This document shows, piece after piece, positions 57,276 through 63,151 of a stretch of DNA of 64,000 bases (its first letter is position 1; each line of letters begins with the position of its first letter). The translations under genes and the position numbers were made by a program. Below the pieces are notes generated by a model. It had not been told where the DNA came from. It saw only the letters and a program-made list of their open reading frames with translations, and searched no databases. Location of the stretch: positions 1,798,001-1,862,000 of the forward strand of contig OZ218963.1 in the NCBI GenBank assembly GCA_965112735.1, in the 5' to 3' direction. The stretch is from Phaeosaccion multiseriatum (Eukaryota > Protista > Ochrophyta, other classes).

Positions 57276-57435
<160 letters not shown>

Positions 57436-58380
57436 TGAATGCAGCCACTCGACTAGCTCCTTGCCGCTACGGCCTTTGCCTCGCTGTGCACGGTGCCTGA
57501 CGTACCGCATCGCCCCCCCTCGCCCCCTCTTGTGTGAATGACCATGGCACCGAAATGACACCGAAATGACACCGACATGACATCGACAGGCCGGTCTGAG
57601 CGTGATGATTGCTGTGGGAGGGAAGCTGTCCAGCATGGCGGAGGAGGAGAACAGAGCCAAGTGCCACTGATGGAGCTAGAGGGATAGAAGCTTAGCAGCT
57701 TCACCCCGATCGTTGGATCTTGAATTATTATTATTGTACTTGCAGGACCCCACCCCATCCCCCTTGAGTATACGAGTGCACCACCCTCTTAAGCTGTACT
57801 TCCCGCGATCAACCGTTACACTCCCCGCGGTCAACAGCCCAAGCACTCATGTATGACGAATGGCGAATGACAGACAGTCGTCCTCGAATCAAAATTGGCA
57901 CCGAAAAGCTCGCTCCCCCCCCCCTCCCTCCCTCAAAAAATGGTTCGGCTCTCCTTCCTTGCCCTCCAGCACCTCTAGATGCCCTCGCGATGCCCTCGTG
58001 CAGGGCATGTGGGTGGTCGCCTAAGTTAACCTATCGCATTTGTGCGACTGCCTGTCTGCTGGGTCGTATCACACAGCGACACGTAAAAAGCGCACACGCT
58101 GCTACTAGTATTACTGCTGCTGCTGCTGCTGCTCCTGCTGTTGCCGGAGTTGGATGGCGACCCTGCCGATGGAACCAAAGCCCCCGTCGAGTCGTTGCCT
58201 CCCCTCCCTGATGAAGGGCTCTGTGTGAGCCTTGTCCCGAAAGGGCCAAAAGGGCCCGTAGGAACGAAATAGTGGTGCGTTGCCTGAAACCGTCAAAACG
58301 TGGCTCCAAGTCCAATGGAGCGTGCCCTCCGGTTCCACTACGTAAGGCTCCCCGTCATCTCATGCAAGAAAGTATACCAT

Positions 58381-61300
58381 TCAGGCAGCGGCGGTGATGA
58401 ACACGGCGACGTGGTGAGCTAACATCTTGCACAACTTAATGTCCGCGTCGTCGAAGGTTCCTCCATTCACCTTGTTCATCATCTGAGTGAGAAGAAGCAT
58501 CCCCGCATCCGCCAACAGAGAGAGAAATGGGAGGCAACAGAGTGTGAATAAAGAGGCGCGATGGCAAGAGAACAGTTACGGGGAAGACGGAACACTACGG
58601 TGGAGTTTCAGTTCAGTGACAGTAACAAGCAACGTGATGGCAATTCTCACCTCGATGACAGCCAGGACTTTTCCGTTGCCGTCCGGAGACATGACCGGCA
58701 CCCTGCATGCATAAGTCGAGGATTCATTCACTGTCAGTTAGGTAGGGAGGGCGCCTTGGGACGTTTCAGGTGGCAGTGGAAGCAGTGGAAGGCCCCCCAG
58801 CTCGCTCACGCGTCTATTCCTCTCCCCTCCCTCCTCCCTATCAACACAGAAGTACTTACGCGATGAGATTGTATGTGCTAGTTTTGAGGGACTGGTCGAT
58901 TTTGGCGTAGAAACGGTTATCCTTGGCGGTGTCCTTGACATGGATCACCTGCCCCCCCCCCCCGCACACACACGTAACACACGCAATGGAGAGAAGCAGA
59001 GAGAAGATGAGCGGCGAACACATCAACGGAATCATCGCACCCTCCTTGATTGAAGCCTTTTTAGCCCCCTTCATCTTGTTTCCATTTCCACATGCCCTCC
59101 ATCCCCTCCCCGCACCTGCTTGGTCCTGACCGCCTCTCCCACCACTCCCTTGCCCATCGGCACAGTGATGAGCTTATGTGTCACCAGCGTGCCGTCGTGG
59201 GTCGTCGCCACCTGTGACCAGCACGACCGGGTTCGTGAGAAATCTGGTTGTTTCACTTCCACACGTGTGAGGAGTAGTCTCTGTAGGCGTTTTGTTGAGT
59301 GCCCAGAGGAGCTCTATTTCCACTTGTACCTTTTTACGCCCCTCCACCCCCCCACCCCCTCTTTCTTTCTCGTCTTTCTCGCCCCCTCCCCTCCTCGTCT
59401 CTCTCTCTCTCTGATTCCGTTACCTTGCTCCAGAGCTCCTGCTTCTCCTCGTCCACAAAGAAGAGCGAGCAGCGCGAGGCACTTATCATCTCATGCCCGT
59501 GATCGAGCAGAGCGGTGAACAGCGTGTCGAGCTCGCGTTGCTTCCTGCGGTACCAGGAGGGAAGCAGACGAGACAGGGAGAGAGGGAGGGAGGGAGAGAG
59601 AGAAGGAGAGAGGGGGAGAGAGACAGGGCGTGTGAGTGTTGTGGGAGGAAAGAGAGGAGGAGAGAAAGATTAAGTCCTTCACATCCAAGAGGGTGTTGCT
59701 CTTCTGTGCGCCTTGGTAGGTGAGCTTGGGCTGCTCGGTTTCTCTACCCCCCAAACTCTCTACCGGCATACGCACTCACTTCTCTCTCTCCTTGGTGGTC
59801 GTGTCGATGAAGAGGAGAGAGCACTTCATTTGCAGTTTCCGGGGTTCCGGGTTCAGCAGTTCCAGTTTCAGTTGCGGGACAAGGCGAGGCAGCGAGTGCA
59901 CAGGGGAAGAGAAAGAGAAAGAGGGGGGTGGTGGAGTGAGCAAAAGAGGGAGAGAGAGGCATTAGTTTGGCTAATTTTTCTGGAAACAGGATCGCTTCGC
60001 TCCAATTTTCTCCTGTGTGTGTGACCCCATCAACTGTGCCGCTGATGATTTGGCCTGGCTCTGAACACCACCCGGTGCCATCCGGTGCCATCCGTCAGTT
60101 GCGGTGCTGCTGCCACGGCCGCCCCTTCCCACTCTACTCCATGCTCCTTCCCTTCTTCGCCCCCTTCTGCTCCGCCACTCTGACCCTCCCTCCCTTTCTT
60201 TGCTTCCTTCGTTCCTCCCCTAATCCTTCCCTTCCTCCACTCCCTCCGCTTGCCATCCTCACCATTCCCAGCAGGCAGCCCGCGATGACGCCAATGGCCG
60301 CTCCTGCAGTTGCCACTATCTGGGTTATTCTCAGCCTGTGCTGCGCGGCCGATATGACTGGGATGGGGAGGCCAAGCTTCGTAGCCATGGATTCCACGTA
60401 TCCTGTAATGGGAGGGAGGCGAGGAGGGCACAAAACAAAATCGAGAGAATCCGGGAACAAATGAACTTCGACGACTGCAATAAAGATTAAGAGGGTGAGA
60501 GGGTTACTCCGTCGGTCGCTACTGTGTGTGTGGCTCAATCTCTCTCTCGTGTGTCCCTATCTCTATCTCCCCCCCTTTTCCCTTCTCTCTCTCTCTCTCT
60601 CTCTCCTATCTAATCTGCTTGAACGAACCTCCGAACAGAACGCCCGAGGTGTCCGACACCACTTGTCCGAGAGCGGCGGCGCTCAGGGTGGCCAACCCGA
60701 ACTTGACTCCAATGGTGTTGTCGATGAGATCCCCTGCCTGGATCATGACCTGAGAAGAAGAGAGGACGAGGGGGAAGCCGGGGGGGGGGGGGTGGTAACA
60801 TTTCCTGAGCCAAGAATCCTTGCTTGGGACTTGGCTGAGAGAAAACTTTGCTTCCAATGAAACTATATACTCTTCCCCTTCGTCCTCAGCTCAGTCTTAC
60901 CAGATTGTCCACAAATCCGAAGCCTATAAACGGCACTGCTGAGTGCATGAAGAGGACGCGCAGCTGTTCCAAGGAAGGGCGGGGAACGACGGTGCCTCCC
61001 TCTCCTACTTCACCCCCACCCCCTCTTTCCGCTACTATTGGTGCTGCTGCTTGCTTCAGCTCCTTTCCCTCTTCTATTGGAGCTGTCGACGGAGGGGAGG
61101 CGGCTTTCGCAGGGGAGGCCCTGGTCAGAGAGGGGCCGGTGAAGCGCCTCACCATTCCGCAGTGTCCTATGGGGGGAGAAGGGTGCCAGTCAAGGCGGAA
61201 ATCAGTTCGTCTTCTTTCCTCTCGTGCAACGAGTGTTGCTTGCACTCGTGATTCCGTTCATCCAACCCCTCCATTCCCAACAAATCTTGCGTACCTGCTG

Positions 61301-61574
61301 GTGTTGGTGGGGGCCGCGACCATGCGATGGTTGACTGCCCTGAGAACGTGTAGCACGACCTGCTCAAGGAATTGCTGTAGCCGCCATTAGCCCTGATCCA
61401 TGCAGCGCTACCGGCTTCGTGTGGCCTCGCCCGTCGCCTCGAAGAAGATGAGGAGTACTTCCGCTGCTGCTGCAGCTGCTGCTGCAGCACGCGCCCACTA
61501 CCTATTGCTACTCGCTGCCGACAGCTCTTGAGGCAAAGAGCGCCGCCATGAGGCACTATTGCGGGGGCCGTCAT
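58381..61574 (-). CDS. TMEM65-family mitochondrial membrane protein fused to a C-terminal GAF domain (10 exons)
   Basis: R/S-rich presequence. TMEM65 motifs AVPFIGFGFVDNLVMIQAGDLID, AAALGQVVSD, GAAIGVIAGCLLGMCSLLF. In-frame continuation ASRCSLFFVDEEKQELWS..PMGKGVVGEA..DNRFYAKID..VPV..VLAVIEMMNKVNGGTFDDADIKL. Confidence 0.85.
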
Positions 61575-63151
61575 CTTTCTGTGTGCAGGCGCCTCACCAA
61601 ATACACGTCTTCTGGTGCCATCCTATTGTATTACCCCCCCCCCCAAATCCCTCCTTCACCCTATCCTCCTCTTCACCCGGCCTTATGTCTCTTGCCTGCT
61701 TCGTCGTCAGCCCTCCTCCTCTTCCACCTCCGCTTCCTTGCTGTGAACGCGCCTTCGCAGCCTCTGGAGCTGAAAAAGGAGCAAGACTACAAGGACCATC
61801 ATGCATAAGACGTTGGAGGGGTAGTGTCCTGCATAGCAGCAGCAGCGGCAGCAGCAGCATCACGAGGAGGAGTAACAACAGGAAGCGCACACAAAGCAAA
61901 GCATGGAGGGCTCGGAGTAGAAGCGAGTTGGGGGCTGACAACAGCAGCAACAGCGCCGTTTTCCACCTCTACAGGAGCCCAGGAGTGAGAGGGAGAGGGA
62001 ACGGCATTCGCGGCTCTCATATGATGGCCTTGTCGCATTCGATGGAAGAAGACCATCCGGAGGGGGATGGTGCTGTCGAAGATAACGACGAGGACGATCG
62101 AGTGAGCAGGGAGGGGGGAGAAGGTGGTGCTGGTGTGGGTGAGACAGACGCAATCACACGCGCGAAAGCTGCGGCTGCTGCTCGGGAAAATGCAGGCACC
62201 CAGACCGTGAGCCAGAGGGTGAATGAAATATTCGGCAAGTTCGTCATGGAAGAGGAAGAGGACGACGACGTGTACATTGACGAGGAGGCGGACATTGCCA
62301 ATTTGGCGGAGCTAAGAGAAGAGTCCAAGAGGCTGGTGACGACGTACTTGAAAAAGATGGGGACAGGAGACATGATGGGGTCGCCAGCAGCGACGGCTTC
62401 GGACGGCGGCGGCGACTGGGACGTGAACGACCCGCAACAGATGGCCAAACAAGTGGCGGCGGCTTTTCTGAAAATGAAGGAGAGAGAGAAGAGAGAGGCG
62501 GCGGGGGGAACCAATGAGAGCAAACCAGAGGGGGGGGATGGAGGCGGCCAGACACCGGCTTGGAGAAGAACGTTGCCCAGACGGAGGAATAAGAAACTCG
62601 GTAATAGTGGTGGTGGTGGTGGTGGTGGTGATAGCGTGGGGGAAGGGGGGAACGACATGCAGGAAGTGCAAGACTCACAGGTCCCTTATTCAGGCAATGA
62701 TGCCTCCTTGAGTGGCTCTATCGGCGGGAGGCGGAGGAGAGGAGCCACTATCTCTGGCGAAAGTTGGGCAGAGGTGATGAAGACTCTCCAGCAGGAGGGG
62801 ATGCACGGGAAGGAGGAAGAGGGTGCTACTCAGAATGGTTGGGTCAAGGGCAGCAGTACCACCTCTGGAGCGCCAACAACCCAAAGGAAGAATGCACAGA
62901 CGACTACCCCGAAAGAGCAAGAGGATAGTGGCGACGACTTTGAGAGGAGGAAGCACCAATTCTCCTACGAGGTGGGTGGAGAAGGAGAGGGGCAAGAAGG
63001 CCCGCGGTGGGGTCGCGCGGTGGAGAAGGTCATGGCGGCGGGAGAAGTGGCCAGTACTCCAGAGTTCTTTGCCGCGGCCGAGGAAGAGAGGGAGGACTGG
63101 CTCGCCGTTCTGCAGGAGATGAAGGCGAGGGTGAAGGCGGGCGAGGAGTGA
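61559..63151 (+). CDS. Acidic low-complexity protein of unknown function; true start probably downstream
   Basis: 530-codon open frame with non-repetitive, protein-like composition; no recognisable domain. Confidence 0.55.
   Translation: MRGPSSFCVQAPHQIHVFWCHPIVLPPPPNPSFTLSSSSPGLMSLACFVVSPPPLPPPLPCCERAFAASGAEKGARLQGPSCIRRWRGSVLHSSSSGSSSITRRSNNRKRTQSKAWRARSRSELGADNSSNSAVFHLYRSPGVRGRGNGIRGSHMMALSHSMEEDHPEGDGAVEDNDEDDRVSREGGEGGAGVGETDAITRAKAAAAARENAGTQTVSQRVNEIFGKFVMEEEEDDDVYIDEEADIANLAELREESKRLVTTYLKKMGTGDMMGSPAATASDGGGDWDVNDPQQMAKQVAAAFLKMKEREKREAAGGTNESKPEGGDGGGQTPAWRRTLPRRRNKKLGNSGGGGGGGDSVGEGGNDMQEVQDSQVPYSGNDASLSGSIGGRRRRGATISGESWAEVMKTLQQEGMHGKEEEGATQNGWVKGSSTTSGAPTTQRKNAQTTTPKEQEDSGDDFERRKHQFSYEVGGEGEGQEGPRWGRAVEKVMAAGEVASTPEFFAAAEEEREDWLAVLQEMKARVKAGEE

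Follow-up and report, generated by a model that had tools for sequence, protein, structure and literature searches.

Animal TMEM65 proteins are needed for Na+-dependent Ca2+ efflux from mitochondria, as reported for the human and worm proteins (PMC12830682). Their role in Ca2+ efflux is also described in two further papers (PMC13254257; PMC10592617), and exchanger activity in vitro has been reported (PMC12830682; PMC13254257). The animal proteins (human Q6PI78 family) stop about 15–20 residues past the third of three hydrophobic helices. In CyaB2 and in phosphodiesterases (PDEs) such as PDE2A, GAF domains form tandem pairs that stand N-terminal to an enzyme. The gene described here, TMEM65-GAF, lies on the minus strand (61574..58381) of a 64,000-nucleotide stretch of contig OZ218963.1 from the ochrophyte Phaeosaccion multiseriatum (assembly GCA_965112735.1, positions 1,798,001 to 1,862,000 of the forward strand; hereafter the window). 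In its predicted product, a basic N-terminal extension and three hydrophobic helices, as in the animal proteins, are followed by a GAF domain of 150 amino acids (aa), which is single rather than paired, is C-terminal to its partner, and has a membrane transporter-like domain instead of an enzyme as that partner.

The TMEM65-GAF architecture is a real, conserved and previously undescribed sensor-bearing form of TMEM65 that is not unique to the window. The protein as a whole is read here, with a probability of roughly 0.6, as a ligand-tuned mitochondrial cation exporter, whose location, membrane side, ligand and effect we infer.

A single gene joins TMEM65 to a GAF domain

A scripted rebuild joined the ten exons in frame (Table 1) and returned the exon chain and the C-terminal sequence that a first-pass annotation of the window had given. 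All nine introns are of the GT..AG type, with lengths of 128–439 nt, and the spliced frame of 1311 nt, from an ATG at 61574 to a TGA at 58383–58381, encodes 436 aa ending in ...NKVNGGTFDDADIKLCKMLAHHVAVFITAAA. Codons 153–436 have a GC content of 0.76 at third positions (GC3) and 0.39 at second positions (GC2), with the introns at 50–57% GC, and this GC3/GC2 contrast is a clear coding signal. Every exon was matched with zero differences by contigs from four public DNA runs (one sample).

Because no RNA run is on record for Phaeosaccion multiseriatum, splicing was assessed by homology to single open reading frames (ORFs) of relatives. A single BLASTP match extends over both domains in Ectocarpus P0152 (60.6% identity, model aa 157–432) and likewise in P0155, a transcript ORF of Tribonema gayanum (60.5% identity, model aa 155–432). 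In the multiple alignment, no gap is found at eight of the nine junctions, i.e., all those from exon 2 onward, including the transition from TMEM65 through exon 5 into the GAF domain. The first-pass annotation had placed this transition at 60263>59823>59545; the order of the exons is upheld by the gap-free homology, but the first base of exon 6 is 59544. The linker encoded at the boundary of these two exons, FIDTTTKEREK/KQRELDTLF (the slash marks the junction), is among the best conserved stretches of the alignment, and the helical linker between the two domains has the consensus DTTxKEREKKQRE. Given the continuous two-domain matches, the gap-free junctions and the conserved linker, the fusion is taken as established, and on this homology it is almost certain that one gene, not two, encodes TMEM65 joined to GAF, as had been proposed.

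A highly improbable alternative is that two products are made, with TMEM65 ending at a TGA after exon 5 and the GAF domain encoded by a separate gene, or with a GAF-less isoform beside the fusion. The GT donor of exon 5 does form part of an in-frame TGA (59779–59777, minus strand), and read-through into intron 5 ends after ...KEREK, so that the C-terminus would be about as long as in the animal proteins; just upstream of exon 5 there is also an in-frame ATG. In Tribonema gayanum, the Trinity gene DN12193_c0_g1, which yields P0155, has a second isoform (P0203) with only a 173-aa ORF of linker and GAF, beginning at the conserved Met of ...GM/SLLL; this transcript is probably unspliced or truncated. 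However, an independent, complete GAF domain would have neither a start codon nor an upstream exon here, and in dozens of single ORFs, among them complete transcript ORFs, the TMEM65 profile finishes in exon 5 and the alignment passes into exon 6 without a gap, across one of the best conserved parts of the family. Two separate products as the main form are nearly excluded. Retention of intron 5, leading to a GAF-less TMEM65 of about the length of the animal protein, is conceivable, and such a minor isoform is compatible with a ligand-tuned exporter as the principal product.

The TMEM65 domain

Pfam scans of the gene model were run exon by exon. The TMEM65 family (PF10507; curated cut-off 25 bits) was matched in profile order, with positions 2–14 in exon 2, 16–54 in exon 3 and 57–102 in exon 4. 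Exon 3 scored 50.7 bits and exon 4 38.2 bits, each above the cut-off alone, and exon 5 aligned to the remaining TMEM65 positions in relatives. Among 34 columns conserved to at least 85% in 95 relatives, 33 are identical in the model. The family-conserved residues that are kept include the acidic D180, D192, D215 and D276, Q211/Q243 and the glycine-rich third helix, and a hydropathy peak is located at aa 255–270, in the exon 4 region. By these profile matches and alignments, exons 2–5 encode a complete three-helix TMEM65 domain, in agreement with the first-pass annotation, and all acidic and glycine positions conserved in the family are shared with the animal proteins. A sequence search found no solved TMEM65 structure. 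The function and location of the algal protein are predicted from its likeness to the animal protein.

The GAF domain and its predicted ligand pocket

Exon 6 alone gives a weak match to Pfam GAF_3 (18.1 bits, profile positions 1–34), and the spliced GAF part (aa 284–436) scores 160–170 bits by phmmer against relatives in which Pfam recognises GAF at 47–64 bits. Judged from this homology, exons 6–10 encode a GAF domain (Pfam PF01590). All sequences in the PDB were then compared with a profile built from 44 GAF domains of the family (alignment A1). PDE2A GAF-B, which binds cyclic GMP (cGMP), scored 116 bits, and the GAF-A and GAF-B domains of CyaB2, which bind cyclic AMP (cAMP), scored 103 and 101 bits. 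PDE5, PDE10A and PDE6 were matched with E-values of 1e-50 to 1e-25, PDE2A GAF-A with 58 bits, and PtsP, Nlh1, DevS and fRMsr with 58 bits or less. An AlphaFold model was made for the Tribonema orthologue P0155 as a stand-in (mean predicted local distance difference test score, pLDDT, 83.5; predicted template modelling score, pTM, 0.66). The model adopts a GAF fold in its GAF part, and its top Foldseek matches were PDE2A, CyaB2, PDE10A, PDE6C, PDE5A and Lcd1, with 36% identity between its GAF domain and PDE10A GAF-B. The best matches in sequence profile and fold are CyaB2 (1ykd), PDE2A GAF-B, PDE5A/PDE6 GAF-A and PDE10A GAF-B, and the GAF domain of an HD-GYP cyclic-di-GMP phosphodiesterase (4mcw) is near the top in both searches. 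The first-pass annotation had called the GAF domain cyclic-nucleotide-type; at the level of the subfamily, its membership of the cyclic-nucleotide-binding GAF clade is supported by the profile scores, with non-cyclic-nucleotide GAFs at no more than 58 bits, and by the predicted fold, while binding itself is a prediction.

Some relatives carry the JGI name free methionine-R-sulfoxide reductase. This identity was rejected; those GAF domains reach only about 21 bits.

The cAMP contacts of CyaB2 GAFb have been listed (PMC4411481). They were mapped to the algal protein via a HMMER alignment of the family GAF profile to CyaB2. R291, T293, I308 and D356 correspond to R308, S310, V325 and D374 and are kept, with S/T at position 310 and D at position 374 each found in 41 of the 44 family members, whereas N359 is lost and corresponds to L377. 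At the position of T381, which we take to correspond to PDE2A T492, 42 of the 44 have T; the PDE2A contact positions used here are those reportedly given by Martinez et al. in 2002. N406, K407, F413 and D417 of the NKFDE motif are present, and these four residues are nearly invariant in the family. The last residue of the motif is I418, a substitution already recognised by the first-pass annotation, and E is variable in the family at this position (27/44). The kept N, K, F and D, the four kept contact positions and a long helix joining GAF to its output module are features shared with the CyaB2 and PDE domains; I for E in the motif and L at the N359/T488 equivalent are differences.

The R-x-S/T motif is nearer to that of the cAMP-binding CyaB2 domains than to that of PDE2A, which is a weak hint, drawn from the alignment, towards cAMP. 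A cyclic nucleotide is put forward tentatively as the ligand, at somewhat less than even odds. It is unlikely that the GAF domain senses another nucleotide, a metabolite or Na+, as the nearest solved relatives, except 4mcw, all bind cAMP or cGMP, and the R-x-S/T motif is like that of the cAMP-binding CyaB2 domains. Such a role would nevertheless agree with the many ligands known for GAF domains (PMC4411481), with the change at one contact position, with Na+ being the counter-ion in TMEM65-dependent Ca2+ efflux (PMC12830682), and with the EF-hands of a sister subfamily (see below), by which the sensed signal differs between relatives. A literature search for a paper on a sodium-sensor GAF domain did not retrieve it. 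Na+ sensing is said to have been proposed for GAF domains of the CyaB1/PDE2A type, which could not be confirmed.

Alternatively, the GAF domain may bind no ligand and, like PDE2A GAF-A, act as a dimerisation domain or scaffold that keeps the TMEM65 subunits together. A three-helix protein must oligomerise for ion transport, members of this GAF clade often dimerise along their connecting helices, and here the GAF domain directly follows the last membrane helix and has kept neither the E of NKFDE nor the residue equivalent to N359/T488. This explanation is distinctly unlikely, since the family profile scores the ligand-binding PDE2A GAF-B at 116 bits and the dimerising GAF-A at 58, and S/T310, D374 and T381 are conserved in 41/44, 41/44 and 42/44 members, respectively. 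Because pocket positions are conserved across the family, a maintained pocket is suggested.

Location, topology and proposed mechanism

The first 60 aa of the model contain ten R+K and one D+E, and the basic N-terminus has no hydrophobic stretch resembling a signal for the endoplasmic reticulum. The protein is probably mitochondrial. Protease treatment of intact mitoplasts removes a C-terminal Flag tag from human TMEM65, so its C-terminus lies on the intermembrane-space side, with Y77 located in the matrix (PMC12830682); the same topology was proposed in an earlier paper (PMC3994636). By analogy, the GAF domain would be exposed to the intermembrane space and not to the matrix, an orientation that is slightly favoured here. 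A GAF domain-containing protein of Toxoplasma was found in the mitochondrial membrane fraction in a study of Complex III (PMC7877769). Membership of the TMEM65-GAF family could not be confirmed for Toxoplasma TGGT1_270800; if this protein is orthologous to Besnoitia P0148, hyperLOPIT data already put one of the family in mitochondrial membranes. Should the protein from the Complex III study be a TMEM65-GAF orthologue, the mitochondrial location of one family member would already be supported by experiment.

In the model of the Tribonema orthologue, the third membrane helix and the first helix of the GAF domain are continuous except for a kink of two residues at the conserved F-I-D. As modelled, such a continuous helix would be the kind of rigid link by which GAF domains drive the outputs of PDEs and cyclases. 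Under the proposed mechanism, the protein would reside in the inner mitochondrial membrane, like animal TMEM65. Its N-terminus would point into the matrix, and the GAF domain at its C-terminal end would lie in the intermembrane space, accessible to small molecules from the cytosol. The GAF domain would bind a small ligand, most likely cAMP or cGMP, and, via the helix that continues the third membrane helix, would alter the activity of TMEM65 in the export of cations (Ca2+).

Several points weigh against this reading. The splicing is supported by homology, and exon 1, junction 1 and the start codon, and hence the mitochondrial presequence, are putative and unverified. The topology is carried over from human TMEM65, and the predicted structure is that of the Tribonema orthologue, not of the Phaeosaccion protein. 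Within the pocket, a ligand-contact position (CyaB2 N359, PDE2A T488) is occupied by L377, and the E of NKFDE is replaced by I418. The NKFDE motif marks most characterised cyclic-nucleotide-binding GAF domains but is no proof of binding, and some GAF domains of the same clade, e.g., PDE2A GAF-A, serve dimerisation.

An analogy, and only that, can be drawn with MICU1/MICU2, the gatekeepers of the mitochondrial calcium uniporter, where a sensor in the intermembrane space likewise tunes a mitochondrial Ca2+ pathway, as the GAF domain would do here; the EF-hands of the sister subfamily bring the parallel closer. The MICU proteins have no sequence relation to TMEM65-GAF, in which sensor and membrane protein form one chain and the predicted target is efflux, not uptake.

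Distribution of the fusion among eukaryotes

A phmmer search with exon 3 as the query against 1.84 billion representative proteins found 466 TMEM65 relatives. Among the 150 best TMEM65 representatives, 68 have a homologue of this GAF domain that begins exactly where TMEM65 ends. Of the relatives with at least 100 residues after TMEM65 (n = 95), Pfam GAF is matched by 50 and EF-hand models by 17. Proteins with both domains were listed by a word search with the Undaria relative and from precomputed Pfam domains. PF10507 and PF01590 are on record together in brown algae (Ectocarpus, Choristocarpus, Discosporangium), Chrysoparadoxa, Chrysophaeum, the alveolate Amoebophrya and chlorarachniophytes. 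The record of Phaeothamnion P0140 lists TMEM65 only, yet its sequence runs into the start of GAF, and that of P0243 from the diatom Trieres lists GAF families only, yet the protein aligns through the TMEM65 part. Several relatives are MMETSP or Trinity ORFs flagged as complete, i.e., single transcripts. A cluster look-up adds Besnoitia besnoiti, Eimeria flavescens, Cardiosporidium cionae, Tribonema gayanum and the choanoflagellate Salpingoeca urceolata, the last from a transcriptome; relatives P0096, P0148 (Besnoitia), P0068 and P0146 are TMEM65+GAF proteins of choanoflagellates or apicomplexans. TMEM65+GAF clusters in the ESM Atlas are labelled Apicomplexa, Chlorophyta and Bacillariophyta, with green-algal members suggested by the cluster label only. 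The protein encoded in the window was itself absent from the results of the homologous-protein search.

The same order of TMEM65, linker and GAF is found in XP_029219738.1 (Besnoitia besnoiti), CTAYLR_004352 (Chrysophaeum taylorii), A0A7S1Z4I3 (Trieres chinensis) and an unnamed Ectocarpus product, with 45–60% identity over both domains, and none of these proteins is characterised in the papers searched. The apicomplexan proteins, at 760–1020 aa, are two to three times longer than the algal one and have extra N- and C-terminal sequence. By these homologies, the TMEM65-GAF architecture is widespread and probably old among eukaryotes and no novelty peculiar to this alga. It may have arisen before the major eukaryotic groups diverged, with a later loss in animals.

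A sister subfamily (P0185, P0195, P0219, P0221 and P0205) differs from the algal protein in having a pair of EF-hands inserted within the GAF domain, which is interrupted ~45 residues from its start; in P0185, the GAF domain spans 116–328 and the EF-hands 163–227. These EF-hands fit a Ca2+-related role of the TMEM65-GAF family.

Two further relatives depart from the common form. Phaeothamnion confervicola P0140, an NCBI model, is family-like through TMEM65 and the first 50 GAF residues and then runs on for 220 aa out of frame, likely an annotation error at an intron. P0088, with 416 aa, has two TMEM65 domains in tandem and is without GAF. A literature search found no paper containing both TMEM65 and GAF; the architecture is undescribed in the papers searched, although it is present in public databases under names such as 'GAF domain-containing protein'.

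Gene structure and neighbouring sequence

For exon 1 (aa 1–93), neither homology support nor clear codon periodicity was found, and the model is homologous to its relatives from about aa 153 onward. Translation might instead begin at M98, in exon 2. The product would then have about 340 aa, with an N-terminal extension as long as that of the Tribonema protein.

Table 1. Exons of the TMEM65-GAF gene (positions in the window).
Feature	Position	Strand	Residues	Content
Exon 1	61295..61574	-	aa 1–93	Putative start codon and Arg/Ser-rich presequence; open from ATG, GT donor
Exon 2	60901..61166	-	aa 94–182	Variable N-terminal region, then start of TMEM65 (first membrane helix); alternative start M98
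Exon 3	60629..60749	-	aa 183–222	TMEM65 core with conserved GDxID and GQxxSD motifs
Exon 4	60263..60402	-	aa 223–269	TMEM65 amphipathic stretch and glycine-rich third membrane helix
Exon 5	59780..59823	-	aa 270–283	End of third helix and conserved linker CSLLFIDTTTKERE(K); gap-free alignment to transcript-derived ORFs at both junctions
Exon 6	59424..59544	-	aa 284–324	GAF N-terminal helix and first strands; predicted pocket residues R308, S310
Exon 7	59116..59211	-	aa 325–356	GAF; predicted pocket residues V325, V347/V348
Exon 8	58860..58948	-	aa 357–385	GAF; ligand-contact positions Y370, D374, T381 (by alignment)
Exon 9	58651..58702	-	aa 386–403	GAF strands
Exon 10	58381..58482	-	aa 404–436 and TGA	N406-K407...F413...D417-I418 motif and C-terminal GAF helix

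Assembly and read contigs differ by a single indel, at 60779, where a poly-C run of intron 2 (60771–60790) changes in length by one base. A long (GT)n microsatellite is located downstream of the gene, at about 57300–57450. On the opposite strand, 61559–63151 (+) is a long open frame with its first ATG near 62050 and an acidic, low-complexity product, which would share a divergent promoter region of ~475 bp with the TMEM65-GAF gene.

Implications

Recent work gives TMEM65 a central part in the efflux of Ca2+ from mitochondria, and whether it is itself the transporter is still debated. The forms with GAF, or with GAF and EF-hands, provide a concrete idea of how this efflux is regulated and independent comparative support for a Ca2+-related role, and they offer natural, ligand-switchable versions of TMEM65 for mechanistic and structural work. 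More speculatively, and with considerable doubt, the ancestral eukaryotic TMEM65 could have been a sensor-coupled mitochondrial cation exporter, in which Ca2+ efflux was gated from the intermembrane space by a cyclic-nucleotide-type GAF domain, in some lineages one with nested EF-hands, and of which animals kept only the bare membrane core. If this is true, the release of Ca2+ from mitochondria would be a direct target of cAMP/cGMP signalling in this alga and across much of the diversity of eukaryotes.

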